From assembly GCA_038496445.1 (NCBI GenBank), contig JALMLS010000231.1:62001-126000 (forward strand): 64,000 bases of DNA, in the 5' to 3' direction. Position numbers and translations under genes: made by a program. The first letter of the stretch is position 1. Each line of letters opens with the position of its first letter. This DNA comes from Trichosphaerium sp. ATCC 40318. Its lineage: Eukaryota > Protista > Tubulinea. Under the pieces are notes generated by a model. That model searched no databases. It saw only the letters and a program-made list of their open reading frames with translations, and was not told the origin of the DNA. Shown piece by piece: positions 12,986-22,226 of this stretch.

Positions 12986-15900
12986 TTATCTGTTTCTATT
13001 CCTTGCTCTTTTCTTCTTATTATTTTTCTTCCCTTTACCGCCTCTGAATACCTTATTTCCAGGTTTATTTTCCCAAACCAACAATCGCATATCATCGACA
13101 CTAGGCATCACAACTTAGTTTCAAAACGAAAACAAAAAACAGAAAGAAATAAGAAAAACTACAACTGCCATTTTTCAGACATGTCTCTCTGTCTGTAATA
13201 GTTTTTATAGGTTGAATATAAACATACCGTATTGTTGCTTGTCCTCCCATTCCTATTCGATGGTATGGGTGATAAATCTTTATTCTCTGACCTGGTTTAA
13301 AGTAACTTTCAATCTTGTTTTTGTCATCTGTAAAGTTATATATTGAGACTCTTGTGATATTTCCGTTTTGGTCTTTTGCACATGTATGTATTCCACTAGC
13401 ATATACACCAGTAGATAGAAGTTCTAGACGAAGATAACTAATAATAAGTTAGAGAGAAATTGACATTTTTGAATTTCTTCCAAAAATAGATTCAGGCTAA
13501 ACCAAAATCCAAATACCACAAGCAGCAACGATGTGAAGGGAATAATATTAACAGTAAATACTAATATTATATCCCCTCTATAAATTTTACATCATGTACT
13601 ATTGGTACTGAATAGGTTGTGAGCAGAATCAATTGGGTTTTGGATTTTTATGTTTTTTGTGTTGTCAGATTTTATTACCGTTTTGGGTATTTCTTGTCGT
13701 GATGAGGAGATATTTCATTAAGAAATATTAGAGTATCCATCTTATAATTTGGTCTTCCGGTACTTACCTTGAAAAAGAAACAGTAAGTAACAGTAGTAGC
13801 CAGACAACATGTTAGTTTTTTGGGTTTTTTTCGAGAAAAGTTCTTTTGGAGAGCAAGCTTACGTACACCTAGCCGAGGTTGAAAGTTGCTTCTTTTCATA
13901 TAATTATGTCCTGCTGATAGCTGTCTTTCCAGTTGAGCAAATTCGTTCAAAATCTGGTTAAGTAGAGTCGCTTTTGTTAAAAATAAGTAAAGTTCATCCA
14001 AGTGACTAGAAATGACTAATCTTACGTGTTGCTACTGGAGCGAAAATCTCATCTTCAGCTTTAGGCTCATTAAATGAACCACCTGGAACTGTTTCAGCTT
14101 TTGGTAAGACACTGAAAGGGTCCTAAAGATGATAACAGTAAGTAAAATACAATTACACGAAATAGAGTCTATTTGTGTTGTATGGAAAGCATTGCTTAAT
14201 AAAGACATCAACACGAGATCTGAGATCCTTGGTTTACCCTGTAAACGTGTGTACAGTCCAAGACTTGGATTGGTATGTTTTTGCTTGTTGAATGCTTGTA
14301 AACACTGAAATTTATCAACGTACACTAGTTTTCCCTCCTGTTTGTTTTGCCATTGACAAGGATACTTCTAGCAACTTCTTTGGTGGATAATCTGCAATAC
14401 TTGGCCAGAATGGAAACATGTGTTCCTCGGCATCGTGTCCGATATCCAGAAGCTCTTGTGCACGTTTATTATTACCAAGCTTTATTTCAATGAGTCCGAG
14501 ATCATAGTTAGCTAAATAAAAAGAGTTAGCACTCAACAGAGCTCCAATGATGTCCAAAAAAAGAAAAGAAGTTGCATTCAATGAATAACGTTGCAACGAA
14601 ATGATTGAGTAATAGAAATGAGTTAATATAAAGTTTCTGTTCCATACCATCTGGGTATACACGTGAATAGTATTCTAAACTATCTATAAATTTTATATAA
14701 TCTTCACGTGCTGCCATGAGAAGTTCTCGTTGTTTTTTTTTGTTTGAACATGTTTGTGATAAATCAAAGCATGCCTTTCCTCTATTCCGAAGTAGGTCAG
14801 TCCTTTGTGGATGACTCTAAATAATAATTAGTATTTTAAAGTTCGCTTTTAATTTACAAAAACTGTAAGAGCACAGTGCTAGTGAAATATGACGGAGAGG
14901 AGCTTTAAGTTTGGATTTTGTACAAAAGTTGCATAGCGTACTTGTAGAACAGAGTGTGACCACCTACGCATCTTTTCGCTCTCTTTTTGAAACAAATATG
15001 CTGTAGCAATAAACAAAGCAAAGAATTGCTCCTCAGGATGTGCCTCTTAAAGAGAGTTAGAATGAAGAAAAGAAAAAAACCCTTAAACTTTGATAAACGA
15101 TTGTAAAAATGTGTACCATGACAAGATGTAGCATAACGTATTGTTAATGGCCAGTTTTTGCTTGCCACAAATGTAATATATGTACTAGATAAATATTAAC
15201 CCAAAATAGGAGTATGTATAAAGTTTAAAGTTGAGGACAGCACAAGGTTGTAAAAACAGAAAAAAAAGTTTCGATGAAAAAAAAAAAGAAGAAGAAAGCC
15301 ACGCACTTCAGTACCATTGCATCCACGTTATTGTTGAATTTTGCTTGTCTAACAACTTCATATAAACGCATCATATTCTGTGGGTACAGTTCAAGACAAA
15401 TAGTATCAACACGAAGTGCAAAAGCAAAATGAGCGATTGCTTCTTCATACTGACCTTGACTTAACTCAACACGACCCTTCTCCAGATAATCAATCGCTTT
15501 ATAAAATTTTTCACCAACAGGTGATACCTTGCGATATTGTTCAAGATCCTAATCACAATAAAGTGAGCAACAAGTGGCTTAAATCCAGAAAATGGTCAAG
15601 AACTGGAAGGATCGAAAAAAGTTCAGTAATCAATAGTGCTCTTCCCCACCATCAGCAGCGATATACTACCTACACTCTTCCCTTGCGGTAAGAGCGTTTT
15701 AACGTATGTAATGTATGTAATATAACTGATTTATCGCTTACTGATGGCGAGAAAGACCACTGTTAGAATGAATAATACTGCTTATTTAACGTTCTTAAAT
15801 CGAGCACACACAAAAAAACTATTAAACAAAAACGTTCTTCGTACTTTTGTGTTGAATCCAGATGTTCCAAGCTTTTGTTTAATAGGAGCTATCTTTTGGC

Positions 15901-18298
15901 CACTTTGTTTGAGTAATTCTGTTAAAACCTTGGATGTCTCTTCTCCACCAGATAAGTTCATACCTTCCATTTGTCTTTGAATGATTCTCTCAGTTCTTTG
16001 TACTATTGTGTCTGTGCTTTTTGGCTTTATACCAAGCCTACGTTCTTGCATCCGTAGTTTTTGTTCATTAGCTTCTTCCTCAGCAATACGTTGATCAATA
16101 TCGCATTGAATCATTTCTTTCTCAGCTGGAAGGAATCCAGCATCTGATGCATGCTCATACCAAAGTTTTGCCTTCTTGGCACTTCTTTCAACACCAGTAC
16201 CATTAACATAGCACCGAGCCAAATTAACCATGCATAAGCCTTCCTTACCTTAACACAATCAGTATTTTAATATCACACGGGTCAAAGTTTTCCGAGCAGT
16301 TGGGGAGTGCACATGGCACAGAAATATTACTATCGGCGTACTCTCTTTAGCAGCTGTCATGAACAAGTCAAAAGCCTTTTTCTCATCACGTTTAACATAT
16401 AGATTGCCGTACTGATGTAGAATCCCAAGGTTATTATAAGACGCTGAATAATAGTAAGAACAAAAACAACACAAAGTTCTCCGTATTAAATCTTGCTTAC
16501 GGTAATATTTTACTGCAACACCAAGTTGGTAGTGCGCGACTGATCTCATCACATCAGCCTCTACACCAACACCATTTTCATAGCACAAACCAAGTGCATG
16601 TGAAGCTCTTCCTACAGCTTCATTTCTTTCATCTCCTTCCGGAAGATCTTCAGCGATTTGTAGAGACTGAACAAGACAATCAAACGACTTCTTAAAGTCT
16701 TGTTCTACGCCAAGACCTTTTCTATACAGTAGCGCCTTCAGAGGTATCATTAAAAGGAACCGATCATTGTATGAGCGTTAATAAACACGTACAAGCTGAT
16801 ATAATGATTCTGCACTTCCCAGCTCACCTCCTCGTTTAAATTCAGCAGCTGTAGTTTTATAATCTTGCTCGTAGCCTTCCTACAAATACAAGTCAGAATT
16901 GAAGGTAATTGACTCAATAAATTGCACGTACAGCACCGTCTCGATGAAGAAATCCCAAAAAATTATGACGTTGTGCTCCTGGAAGGTTCTTTAGGTCTGG
17001 TGCAGGAACGTTAAAGCCTGAAGTCTCCTTAACCTAAAAGTGGAGAGTGACTTAAAATGTACAGGTTTTTCTTCAAGTCTTACTCTTTGTTTGTCTTCTT
17101 GCCAAGTTGTCTCAGTAAATTGATCATAACGTGCGTGTTTTTGTTGATGGTATACACACTTTTCTTTGTGCTTGATTATTTGGTTCTTTACTGTAGCGTC
17201 TGGACCAAGTAGTAGAGCATAATCAAAAGCTAAAGAGTATAAACTTCGTTATGTACTTTTTTTGAGCAATTGTTAAAAGCAAAACGTGTGGAAGTCAAAG
17301 GTCACCTTTGATTGCTTTACTATGCTGGTTCAACTCTCTGTATGCAAGTCCTTTTCTTATCTTAGCTTTTACCCACCTTGGTCTTAGGTTACAAGCAACT
17401 TTTGCATCAGTCAAAGCTTGCTCATATTGCTTGAGGTTAAGATACGCTGCGCTCCTAAAATCTTTTTGTTAGCTTTTGTTTCTCGAACAACCACCACAAG
17501 CTTGCCTGTTTGAGTAAATAACAGCAAGTTGCGTTAATGGTAGATCATCTTGTAGCCTAATAGCTGCGGTATAGAACTTAATAGCATCAATCAATTTTCC
17601 TTTCCCAAAAGCGATATTTCCTTGTTTTTTAAGTTCTTCAGCATTTTGTTTGGGTTTTTCCGGGACATCATCATCCTCTAGTCCAATTAAGAACAACGTA
17701 CAATGTAGTTTACATACTAGATTTAAGTATGGAATCGATATCTTGTTGAGAAACACCAATGGTAACGAGAGCGCTTGACATTTCGTTCCATATTTTTTGA
17801 AACTGGTCTTGCGACAGGACTGATCCCAAGTGAGCAATCTTATTACGTCCTTCACGCACCTTGTGCGCGTATTAGATGCCTACAGTAAAGAATGCAAACG
17901 TACAGAGTCTATTCCGCCCAAATCAGAATTGAACTCGTTTAAACAACGTTGAGACCATAGTTCTCGCTTTGAAAGCAATGTACATAACATTGGAATGTCC
18001 CAGCTCGCTGTATTTCCTGTTTCCGCTTATTAAACTGTGACAGGCTGAATGTTATGTACCATCTTGTATGTGTTGCTTCGCACTTCTACCCAGTGACGCG
18101 TACACAGATGAGTATTTACTTTTAAACGAATTTCTACCGTCAGCCCATTTTACACCCTCTAATAGTTTCCATCGCGACAAAAATAGAGTTTGTAGGCGTC
18201 TACAGGCTAATTGCTGCAAATATGCGAGGTGCACCAAATTCTAACCAATGTTAGTGTATATTAATACCTATATTGCTCACATCCACGTCAGTGGTCAT
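12986..18298 (-). CDS. Large multi-exon protein: N-terminal DZIP3-type HEPN domain, TPRs, Sel1-like repeats, more TPRs, and a C-terminal OB-fold-like domain
   Basis: HEPN: WDIPMLCTLL...GIDS|VREGRNKIAH...QFQKIWNEMSSAL. TPR: AEELKKQGNIAFGKG, IYSNRSAAY. Sel1: LGLCYENGVGVEAD, NLARCYVNGTGVERS. C-terminus: DQNGNITRVSIYN...PGQRIKIYHPYHR...IRVDD. Some internal exons (13400-15200) are not fully resolved. Confidence 0.78.
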
Positions 18299-18581
18299 TG
18301 GTTGGTTTTAACGGCTGTTGTAATGGCACAACTGACTATTAAGAAAAAACATATCGCTTAAACTGTGAACTTAAAGTCGCCTGTAGAGCTCAGTGTTTGA
18401 ACTGCATTTTTTTTTCAGCTGTTGCAACTACAGCATAACATTTTTCATTCTTGAGGCGTTGACCGTCTTCATAACGCTTGAAGGCTTGGATTTGCGAGTA
18501 TCTGACAGTGACTTTGGCCAGCTAAGTAACCATTAACTCAACGTCAAGATACTCTTTGTGAGTGTATCAAAGAGTTGCAAC

Positions 18582-20863
18582 ATGGTTAAAAAAGTAAGCA
18601 GAAAACAACGTACTCGCAAGGTCTTGTTGATTGGACTAAGTGAACTTGTGAACTGCACATTTATTCATGCCTTTGTTGAAGTTTTCGGCTATTTTTCTGA
18701 TGTTTGGCAAACTTAGCTCTGTTATGCTAATAAGCTACTCCACATTCAAAACATACAACATACGAACGAAATGAACATTGATCCGTTGTATTTTGAGTCG
18801 TTGGAGGTTATAGCAGCAAAAAAATACCCTGACTATGGTAATATACTTGTATACGTTACGCAGCGTTCTAAACACGCGATAGGTAAGAGAATATCATTAT
18901 TGGTTGATGGAGATCGTGATTTGTCGAGAAACTGCTTTAAATCTGATACAGCTTCTATCAGGATACCTAGTGTAGATATAGACGTACGTTGGCCTATTTT
19001 TAGTTCTATGGCCTTTAAATGTTTGTGTTATTGCCAAGGACATCTTTAAACTACGTCTAGTAATTAACTAGGGAAACGCAAACCGTTTTAGAGCATGTAA
19101 AACTTAGCAATAATTATTTTGTAATTCACTGAAATTACTTTCTAAATCCGGTTTAGGTACCCGAAGGCAAAGCCAGATTTGCGACTGTAAGAGATATTTT
19201 ACAGGAGATATATGATGATCTTAAAAAGTCGTCAAAGTACTTTACACAGCCCGCACATGTAGCAAAGTTTACGAAATTATTGTCTAAACTGGAAAACGTG
19301 CGAACAAAAACCATCATCTCAATCCTCTGAGGATTGACTGGTTTATAAATATATGCATAATCTCAAGAATATTGTAGACTATTTGCGGTGACCAAGCGTT
19401 GACAATTGTTATTGATGATCCGTTGGGAATCTCAGATATCGAAACTTTCAACAGTATGTTCATCAGCCCGAAAACCAGCTTGGTTGCATGTGATTTCTGA
19501 TATTTTTGTTTCAAGATGATACATCTCAGCTTGTTTCAATTGAAGAGCGCAAACGTACAGTTGAGGAATGCCGTGATCTTGGGATTCCTTATGTTGCAAA
19601 AATAAAGACAATAACTATTTCTGATCCAATGGAGGCAGCGGAAGTTATTGCAAAACTTGTCAAGAAAGCATCTAAGATTGTAGGATTTACTGGTGCAGGC
19701 GTATCAACAGGTAAGTCTTACTTCTATTTAAACATTATAATTCTGACACAAACGAAGAGTCTGGGGTGCCAGCGTACAGGACTCCAGGAGCAACCAACAA
19801 CATTTGGGATAGGTAACTTTTTGTTTCACGTGTTTTAAAACGAATGAGTCACAAGTTGTTTGCCTCTTTGGTTGAACTCAAAAAACACGTAGCTTTGTTG
19901 CTTACCTATTGCCTAGATATGACCCGACTGAAGTTGCAAACTATGATAAATTCAGAAACGATCAGGAAGCTAGAAAAAAGTACTGGAAGATGTATGCTGA
20001 CTTTCATCCATTGGTTTCAATAGCAAAACCTAATCCTGCACATACATTTTTTAAAGAAATCTGTGATATGGGTAAACTTCATACTGTTATCACCCAGGCA
20101 CGTGATTAATAGCTTTTTTACGTTGAGTTAATTACCCAACAGAATATTGATGGCCTTCATGGAGATGCTGGAGTACCAGCAGAAAAGTTAATTGAGCTTC
20201 ATGGCACAACAAGAACAGTGTCATGCTTGACCTGTGGTAAGTTTTGGTTATAGCTGCCGAGTCCCTTTGGGTTTGTTTTGATTTACTTACAAGACAATAG
20301 GATATAGAGTATCTACAAAAACATTGGAACCATATATTTTTGCTGAAGAGTATGATAAAATAGCTTGTGATTGTGGCGGTATTATGAAGCCAGATACAAT
20401 CTCATTTGTAAGTTGATTTATTCATGAGCTCTCTTTACTTACTTGATCTATAGGGTCAGAACTTGAAGCCTGAGAATATTAAGAATGCGTTTAAGGCTGC
20501 AGAAGAGACTGACTTGATGATTGTCATGGTATGCAACACTGTTGTTTTACTTGACCTCTGACTTTTGTTTGTTAAATAGGGCTCATCTCTTCTGGTTTCA
20601 CCAGCAAACAGACTACCAGAAAAGGCATTAGAGAGAGGTATACCAGTTGTATTGGTTAATATTGGTACAACTTCATTTGATCACATTGTGACAGTCCATG
20701 CTACAAGCAAGTGTGGTAATGTAATGCAGAAGGTAAGTTTTTGTCGCTCACTTGTTTGTTTCTCTAATGAACTTTACAGGTTATTGATAAAATCGTACCT
20801 AAACCAAAGCTAAATGCACATTTTTTACAATACTATACAGTCACACGTCAAGTAAAATGGTGA
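18582..20863 (+). CDS. Sirtuin (NAD+-dependent deacylase) fused C-terminally to a ZPR1 A/B-like domain; multi-exon; stop at 20855 or 20863 depending on the last intron
   Basis: Sirtuin: FTGAGVSTESG, TQNIDGLH, IELHGT, CxxC..CxC, MKPDTISFGQ, GSSLLVSPA. N-terminal part: RISLLVDGDRDLSRNCFKSDTASIRIP, RFATVRDIL, LTIVIDDPLGIS, ERKRTVEECRDLG (ZPR1-like). Confidence 0.87.
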
Positions 20864-21271: not shown

Positions 21272-22226
21272 ATGACAGAACACAAAGTAGTAGTGTTGGG
21301 AGATGTTGGAGTTGGAAAATCGGCGCTTGTACTGCAGTTTGTGGCAAACCAGTTCAATGACGAATATGACCCCACAATAGAAGACTTGTACGCGGTATAA
21401 TGCGTTCTAGCTATTCAATTGCCAATTGCTTTTTTTGTCACTAAACGAATAGTTACACCGCCTTTAGGTTCCGTAAAGGAAGCATTGTTGATGATCAAGT
21501 GCTTGTTATGGATATTCTAGATACAGCAGGAGGAGGCGACTCTTCTGCACTGCGTGAGCCTGTGTGCGATACTTGATACGCTACAAACACCTCAACTAAC
21601 TTTTTGTAGTACATGAAAGCAGCCTGGGGATTTTTGCTTGTTTATTCAATTTCAAGCCGTGCATCTTTTGAGTTGATACCAGAGTTTTTCAACAGAGCGA
21701 AAACGTACGTTAGGACCACGTGTCAGAAAAAAAAACAAAAACGTTTTTTGATTTTATTATCGGATTTCTACTGTCTGTGCTTTTGTTCCGTACGGACCTC
21801 AGAGTACGTATTGTTACCCGTATCAATCATATCAGAGTACTTATATTGCATACCTTTCTTGTAGAAGCCGTATAGGAACGTAAGTCATACGTGCAGTTAG
21901 GAAAGCCAACAAAACAATAATTTTCAAAATTGTTTATACTTACTGACAAGATTTCAACACTAACTGCGTTCAGAGCCAAGAATGGAGAGCCATTTGGCTG
22001 CATGTTGGTAGGTAATAAACAAGATTATTGCGATGAACAAAGACAAGTTAGTACGGGAGAAGGACTTGAGTTTGCAGAAAAACATGGAACTGGTTTTTTG
22101 GAAGCATCAGCTAAAAAACGTATAAATGTGGAACAATCTTTTTATCAACTTGTACGAGAGATTCGAAAAGTAATGGAAATACCATCACCTGCTCCCATCC
22201 AGAAAAGTCGTTGTACATTGGTATAA
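21272..22226 (+). CDS. Ras-family small GTPase with atypical P-loop/switch II and CAAX (CTLV); 4 exons
   Basis: [48 protein letters not shown]. Confidence 0.93.

Follow-up and report, generated by a model that had tools for sequence, protein, structure and literature searches.

A gene in the protist Trichosphaerium sp. ATCC 40318 joins a ZPR1-type jelly-roll domain, which has kept its helical hairpin and lost its zinc ribbon, through a short linker to a complete sirtuin. The gene lies at 18771-20863 on the forward strand of the 64,000-nucleotide stretch analysed here (contig JALMLS010000231.1, positions 62,001 to 126,000; hereafter the window, to which plain coordinates refer), and it is expressed as one unit. 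It is a new member of a family that is undescribed but visible in databases, and that is conserved in all three major branches of Amoebozoa (Tubulinea, Discosea and Evosea).

One transcript for two domains

The junction between the domains falls within a single exon. Exon 4 (19516-19710) encodes the last jelly-roll strand and a helix, a linker of about 25 amino acids and the first part of the Rossmann fold of the sirtuin, and it aligns without gaps to residues 130-189 of a relative from Rhizamoeba (P0011) and to residues 135-193 of a second relative (P0001). In these relatives, the Pfam envelope of jr-ZPR1 ends near residue 150 and that of SIR2 begins near residue 186. Because exon 4 thus holds an end of each domain, the ZPR1 module and the sirtuin are transcribed together, which contradicts a separate transcript for the N-terminal region. 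A first-pass annotation of this DNA, made from the letters alone, had proposed such a fusion. The peptide stretches that it quoted are all found on the forward strand at the positions it gave, and its proposal of one transcript and one protein is upheld by exon 4 and by spliced contigs that join the exons.

Transcript evidence was taken from contigs of three public runs (X1, X2 and X3), one from each of three studies. We take these contigs to derive from mRNA because ten introns are precisely removed in them. With the three runs pooled, 10 of 10 introns are absent, at joints 18983/19157, 19297/19378, 19453/19516, 19710/19758, 19812/19917, 20097/20143, 20236/20301, 20407/20454, 20528/20580 and 20732/20780. 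An X1 contig carries the joint of exons 1 and 2, and a single X3 contig of 1112 nt begins in exon 2, takes in all the exons after it and reaches 20896 in the 3' untranslated region, past the stop codon. This contig also bridges 19450-19520, the region across which the first-pass annotation had recommended obtaining cDNA. Its three base differences from the window (two amino-acid changes, T to K and E to D, and one silent change) fit a near strain. The joints of exon 2 are represented in X1 and X3, both joints of exon 3 in the X3 contig, 19710/19758 in X1 and X3, 19812/19917 in X3, the joints of exon 8 in X3 (with X2 also for 20407/20454), those of exon 9 in X2 and X3, and 20732/20780 in X1 and X3. 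One X1 contig has slightly shifted joints at 20234-20300 and 20408-20457 (introns 7 and 8, with ends TG..TA and TA..GT) and carries one or two additional letters there. Alignment, assembly or an allele probably accounts for this, rather than alternative splicing.

The 11 exons sum to an open frame of 1374 nt (457 codons plus the TGA stop at 20861-20863) that stays in frame throughout, in a window of 37% G+C. Introns measure 45-173 nt, and nine of the ten have GT..AG ends. The remaining one, intron 6 (20098-20142), interrupts the TQ/NID motif of the sirtuin; its 45 nt are skipped in the X3 spliced contig, and a 3-nt ambiguity at this joint was resolved so that QNID is kept, which gives it GC..AG ends. 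The locus is single-copy in the host genome, and a genome profile search found it to be the sole jr-ZPR1 match outside the canonical ZPR1 gene.

The gene most likely starts at the ATG at 18771, judging from its relatives. Family homologues begin at the equivalent residue, which aligns to residue 3 of P0001, and they do so just ahead of a conserved F-D-x-x-E...G-x-Y motif. The first-pass annotation had placed the start at 18582, which is not borne out: no spliced contig of the three runs covers 18400-18900, and the homologues begin at the later ATG. The first mini-exon that went with the earlier start (18582-18593, forward strand) consists of an ATG and three codons followed by GTAAGC; splicing to an AG at 18716 would keep it in frame, but it is unsupported. 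By eye, the 18 in-frame codons that precede the ATG at 18771 bear a faint likeness to a first zinc knuckle, a reading that was rejected given that no profile matches and homologues start at 18771.

An N-terminal half derived from ZPR1

Exon 1 (18771-18983) contains what is probably the start codon, a remnant without cysteines where a zinc ribbon would otherwise lie, and the first ZPR1 jelly-roll strands; exon 2 (19157-19297) encodes an alpha-helical hairpin inserted in the jelly-roll; and exon 3 (19378-19453) encodes a jelly-roll strand with a family-invariant DDP-L-G motif. Profile and sequence searches used the exons as separate queries, and structure was modelled on the Rhizamoeba relative P0011 as a proxy. 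The jr-ZPR1 profile PF22794 is matched in order by exon 1 (profile positions 2-22), exon 2 (26-74) and exon 3 (79-98), with scores of 16.9, 17.0 and 13.9 bits that sum to 47.8, where the cut-off is 27. Full-length relatives match the same profile at E 7e-23 and 2e-18 (81 and 67 bits), with one envelope per protein. A PDB sequence search with exon 1 gave mouse ZPR1 (2QKD) at a whole-sequence E of 7e-6, with matches to each of its two repeats; exon 2 alone matched nothing. The Pfam search was uninformative for exons 4 and 8-11 taken singly, which are short. Furthermore, the host genome separately encodes a canonical tandem ZPR1 (G000:C97:91176-93101), and exons 1-3 can be aligned, in their order, to its second repeat.

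Structural comparison leads to the same protein. The AF2 model of full-length P0011 has a pLDDT of 87.4 and a pTM of 0.80, and its N-terminal domain modelled alone (pLDDT 90.1) combines a beta-sandwich and a long helical hairpin, whose helices at residues 66-81 and 87-104 correspond to exon 2 of the window. The only significant structural match of this domain model is 2QKD (Foldseek E 1.7e-11, next match 0.16; VIA-align Z 16.8, next best 3.5). Structure matches in the ESM Atlas are eukaryotic ZPR1 (TM 0.74) and an archaeal family of 145 amino acids that consists of jr-ZPR1 only, and an ESM Atlas feature search with the same domain returned sub-threshold rows only.

The first-pass annotation had also held that the C4 zinc-finger cysteines are gone, and this proved correct. 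The zinc ribbon PF03367 has no match at the locus or on 18717-18983, and the canonical gene alone matches it. The sole cysteine of exon 1 falls inside the jelly-roll, and in relatives TIGR00310 aligns only from about profile position 40 (approximately 40-185). Alignment with both halves of canonical ZPR1 indicates that the family begins directly after the second zinc knuckle. The likeness to a ZPR1 A/B module that was claimed at the same time stands insofar as the N-terminus is ZPR1-derived, but the domain is a single jelly-roll with a helical hairpin and not an A/B tandem. For the source of this module (repeat 1, repeat 2 or archaeal), identities are 28% versus 26% and bit scores 12.2 versus 14.1. 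Exon 1 has, in addition, an insertion of 15 amino acids (18837-18881) that is peculiar to this species among family members and that resembles a partial repeat of the next beta-strand (G-N-I-L-V-Y-V, then G-K-R-I-S-L-L-V).

A complete sirtuin

The C-terminal part is a sirtuin, as the first-pass annotation had it, with NAD motifs, catalytic histidine and zinc cysteines intact. Its family-conserved motifs are GAGVS (19692-19706), SGVPAYR, PNPAH, TQ/NIDGLH, SFG and GSSLLVSPA. The Rossmann NAD motifs GAG-x-S, S-G-I/V-P-x-F/Y-R and T-Q-N-I-D lie in exons 4, 5 and 6/7, respectively, and their columns are invariant in the family. Beyond the Rossmann start in exon 4, exon 5 (19758-19812) supplies the NAD-binding loop SGVPAYR, and exon 6 (19917-20097) supplies the helical module as far as the T-Q of the TQNID motif. 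Exon 7 (20143-20236) continues with NIDGLH, the catalytic histidine (L-H-G; codon 20200-20202), whose column is nearly invariant in the family, and the first zinc cysteine pair. The second pair and the substrate-cleft motif S-F-G follow in exon 8 (20301-20407). By family alignment, the four-cysteine module comprises a CxxC at 20224-20235 (codons 20224-20226 and 20233-20235) and a CxC at 20366-20374 (codons 20366-20368 and 20372-20374), and the relative from Clastostelium has an identical CxC spacing. Exon 9 (20454-20528) encodes a Rossmann strand with DLMIVM at its end, exon 10 (20580-20732) the GSSL-V-PA NAD-binding strand and the C-terminal part of the Rossmann fold, and exon 11 (20780-20863) a tail that is not conserved.

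Profile PF02146 is matched by exon 6 (profile positions 26-84) and by exon 7 (85-113; 29.2 bits, above the cut-off). PDB matches are Sir2Af1 and Sir2Af2 for exon 6, and 5OJ7, Sir2Tm and Sir2Af2 for exon 10. When relatives were searched by tblastn, exon 5 was 78% identical to P0004 and exon 10 was 58% identical to P0001, while exon 8 was matched by relatives and exon 9 by P0008 and P0010. The NCBIfam CobB deacylase models NF040867 and NF001753 match end to end, with scores under their equivalog cut-offs. The C-terminal half of P0011 compares best with Sir2Tm, Sir2Af1 and Sir2Af2 (target TM 0.88-0.92), ahead of SIRT3, SIRT4 and SIRT5, and the nearest relatives outside the fusion family are bacterial Sir2 proteins of about 250 amino acids, with about 40% identity. 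Given these features, we consider the sirtuin half likely to be an active NAD-dependent protein-lysine deacylase. Read by eye against the SIRT5 motif, the Y-x-x-R pair of class III desuccinylases is missing from it, with F in the place of R. The 70-Mb host genome has about 14 SIR2 loci.

A family across Amoebozoa

About ten protein clusters carry the fusion of jr-ZPR1 and SIR2. An exhaustive search of representative protein collections with exon 4 returned P0001 (445 amino acids), P0004 (343 amino acids) and the fragment P0002, each spanning the junction, and gave no near-identical match to the window's own protein. Further members (P0007-P0010 and P0021-P0023) came from word searches with P0001 and with a family alignment. 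All full-length members have PF22794 and PF02146, and none has PF03367. The named sources are Rhizamoeba saxonica in Tubulinea, Dermamoeba algensis and Acanthamoeba castellanii in Discosea, and Mastigella eilhardi and Clastostelium recurvatum in Evosea; the remaining members are metagenomic. By exon-wise tblastn and fragment alignment, the exons of the window are collinear with P0001, P0004/P0011, P0008, P0009 and P0010, and the gene fits the family layout of a cysteine-free N-terminus, a jelly-roll with hairpin, a short linker and a complete SIR2. In the overlaid row of the fragment alignment, the aligner placed some exon translations wrongly. Among seven full-length members, mean pairwise identity is 31% in the N-terminal domain and 43% in SIR2. 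Such values across deep amoebozoan lineages lead us to conclude that both halves are under constraint.

The Acanthamoeba castellanii orthologue (XP_004352555.1; UniProt L8HEA7), which bears the database name 'transcriptional regulator, Sir2 family protein', has PF22794 and PF02146 without PF03367 and is collinear with the window protein at about 35% identity. Its N-terminal extension is longer, and it has an acidic insertion. P0008 is an uninterrupted open reading frame of 471 codons on a 13-kb eukaryotic metagenome contig from JGI (L018), and with it the family may extend past the named amoebae. The neighbours of this intronless gene are intron-bearing eukaryotic genes (NAGLU and a Tup1-like WD40 gene). 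In a sirtuin tree, the 18 sirtuins from bacteria group together with support (90/99) and exclude each of the ten fusion proteins, a grouping that fits a single origin of the fusion; the ZPR1 protein P0006 was wrongly included as a row in this tree, and P0007 was left out as too short.

The first-pass annotation knew of no described ZPR1-SIR2 fusion. Our literature text searches likewise turned up no paper on a fusion of ZPR1 with SIR2 or a sirtuin, but database entries such as XP_004352555.1 do exist, the architecture can be seen in public databases from Pfam matches already computed there, and the gene belongs to a conserved family. A survey of sirtuin evolution names CAP-C and a few singleton fusions, with no ZPR1 among them (PMC9486876), and a study of Acanthamoeba sirtuins treats four homologues, AcSir2a-d, which do not include XP_004352555.1 (PMC7376869).

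Possible roles of the fusion protein

We tentatively propose that the ZPR1-derived half serves as a client-recruiting module of the sirtuin. The leading candidate client would be eEF1A or a close eEF1A-like GTPase, gripped via the retained helical hairpin, and the enzyme would deacylate the elongation factor or intermediates of its folding. Zpr1 is a dedicated eEF1A chaperone that reportedly makes its contacts through a zinc finger and a helical hairpin, and the binding and folding of eEF1A is the sole characterised role of the ZPR1 fold (PMC11790920, PMC10869706). Acetylation of eEF1A is a regulated mark in animals (PMC7347577). The fusion retains the hairpin, both in the P0011 model and in exon 2 of the window, and the presence of a canonical tandem ZPR1 elsewhere in the genome leaves the fused copy free for a new role. 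Reader or adaptor domains also occur on other sirtuins, among them those of Acanthamoeba (PMC7376869; PMC9486876). Because only the hairpin survives, we put eEF1A or a close relative as the client at about one in three, and to the whole chain (an active deacylase, recruitment by the ZPR1 half, and eEF1A as the client) we assign a probability of roughly 0.35. The fuller version of this proposal, in which Amoebozoa keep a dedicated eEF1A eraser whose zinc-less ZPR1 clamp hands the elongation factor, or intermediates of its folding, to a sirtuin of bacterial type, appears rather doubtful to us.

Several observations weigh against an eEF1A client. The zinc finger, one of the two elements reported to hold eEF1A, is absent from every family member; the hairpin resembles its canonical ZPR1 counterpart no more than loosely in sequence; and the pTM of the full-length model hints that the N-terminal domain may pack on the sirtuin and act within the molecule. 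A complex prediction for residues 1-168 of P0011 with Balamuthia eEF1A (P0243) returned 'no answer' at a score of 0.09 and is given no weight on either side. The host genome also holds an eEF1A-like gene (L012, G000:C86:78462-82235; match 79962-80735, minus strand) with an open piece of 272 amino acids that is 54-61% identical to canonical eEF1A and has an in-frame intron free of stops. It may be a divergent eEF1A paralogue and, if so, would be relevant to the question of the client. GTP_EFTU is strongly matched at two more loci, C86:110308 and C419:5020.

A rival reading, to which we give about the same weight as to an eEF1A client, is quite plausible, if short of probable, namely that the deacylase is active but its jelly-roll does not bind eEF1A. 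The domain would instead be a lid that regulates or braces the sirtuin from within the molecule, or an old fold taken over as an adaptor for some other client. Such a role would account for the family-wide loss of the zinc ribbon. Moreover, the linker forms a strand only when the sirtuin domain is present, which together with the pTM of 0.80 suggests a fixed arrangement of the domains, and the existence of archaeal jr-ZPR1-only proteins means that the fold can function in another way without the ribbon. Set against this are the usual tendency of fusion partners to share a pathway, the lack of any established alternative ligand for the ZPR1 fold, and the fact that the helical hairpin, a protruding binding element, has been kept and constrained.

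Two other explanations have far less to recommend them. The first-pass annotation had offered, as an alternative role, an integrated decoy for pathogen effectors that attack eEF1A. Spelled out as an immune device, the sirtuin would be an NAD-consuming effector and the ZPR1 module a decoy for pathogen effectors directed at eEF1A or ZPR1. A neighbour on the opposite strand carries the label, itself unchecked, of a candidate HEPN/TPR/Sel1 immune gene, and SIR2 domains serve as NADases in prokaryotic defence and in one human homologue (bioRxiv 10.1101/2024.09.18.613514). However, the gene is single-copy, its orthologues are conserved across Tubulinea, Discosea and Evosea, and its sirtuin is CobB/Sir2Tm-like with zinc module and substrate-cleft motifs intact. 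In addition, no family among the PADLOC defence models matches P0011, P0014 or P0001 at E <= 0.001. We therefore disfavour the decoy and NADase alternative as very improbable. Finally, exons this short, with individual scores under the Pfam cut-offs, might suggest that two neighbouring genes, or a sirtuin gene and a nearby piece of a ZPR1 pseudogene, have been misread as one. Yet spliced contigs join all the exons, exon 4 carries the ends of both domains, the coding sequence is open and in frame, and the same architecture recurs in about ten independent clusters, including the intronless reading frame, such that an artefact of this kind is hardly conceivable.

It seems appropriate to ask what the fusion would add to the understanding of either partner. 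Sirtuin specificity comes largely from accessory domains and, to our knowledge, no proteins other than the eEF1A chaperone and relatives of it in archaea have shown the ZPR1 fold until now. A conserved and expressed fusion of the two in deep amoebozoan lineages is a 'Rosetta stone' hint that the sirtuin acts on the client pathway of ZPR1. The family also indicates that selection can maintain the jelly-roll and hairpin of ZPR1 in the absence of the zinc finger, which bears on the question of which part of ZPR1 holds the client. If the fusion is indeed an eEF1A eraser, NAD level would be tied directly to the acylation state and biogenesis of eEF1A, and an enzyme that builds on the client-binding fold of ZPR1 would be known for the first time. 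If the N-terminal domain is a mere regulatory lid, the family would be a modest addition to known sirtuin architectures. The orthologue in Acanthamoeba castellanii, omitted from the published sirtuin survey, makes the idea directly testable.

Neighbouring genes

A few hundred bases upstream of the fusion start, on the minus strand, lies a gene with TPR- and Sel1-like repeats (12986-18298). Downstream, at 21272-22226 on the forward strand, is an intron-bearing gene for a Ras-like small GTPase, with a P-loop read by eye as G-x-x-x-x-G-K-S. Its switch II, also read by eye, is DTAGGGD, where DTAGQE is usual.

Comparison with known systems

Canonical ZPR1, as known from the mouse protein (2QKD) and yeast Zpr1, shares with the fusion a jelly-roll, or double-stranded beta-helix, into which an alpha-helical hairpin is inserted. 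A DDP-x-G-N-S-like strand and a Y-x-R-T...E-L-G tail are also common to the two. The difference is one of composition: canonical ZPR1 is a tandem of zinc finger and jelly-roll, whereas the fusion has one module with the C4 ribbon deleted and an enzyme attached. In having a single jelly-roll, it resembles the archaeal jr-ZPR1-only proteins (about 145 amino acids; TIGR00340, zpr1_rel; ESM Atlas cluster), of which 99% of cluster members have PF22794 with no PF03367 match, and whose TM values to the N-terminal domain model are 0.65/0.74. These archaeal proteins stand alone, however, and their sequence likeness to the fusion is weak (TIGR00340 E 3e-10 to 1e-4).

For the other half, the sirtuin core is like those of CobB, Sir2Tm from Thermotoga and Sir2Af1-Af2 from Archaeoglobus, to which the fusion adds an N-terminal ZPR1 module of about 170 amino acids. 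The closest parallels in overall design are the YEATS-SIR2 protein AcSir2 (PMC7376869) and the CAP-C-SIR2 protein 'SIR8' (PMC9486876), in which a sirtuin core is likewise combined with a protein-binding or reader domain. Those fusions have class IV (SIRT6/7-like) cores and partners other than ZPR1, whereas the amoebozoan family described here joins a core of the CobB and Sir2Tm kind to a domain derived from ZPR1.

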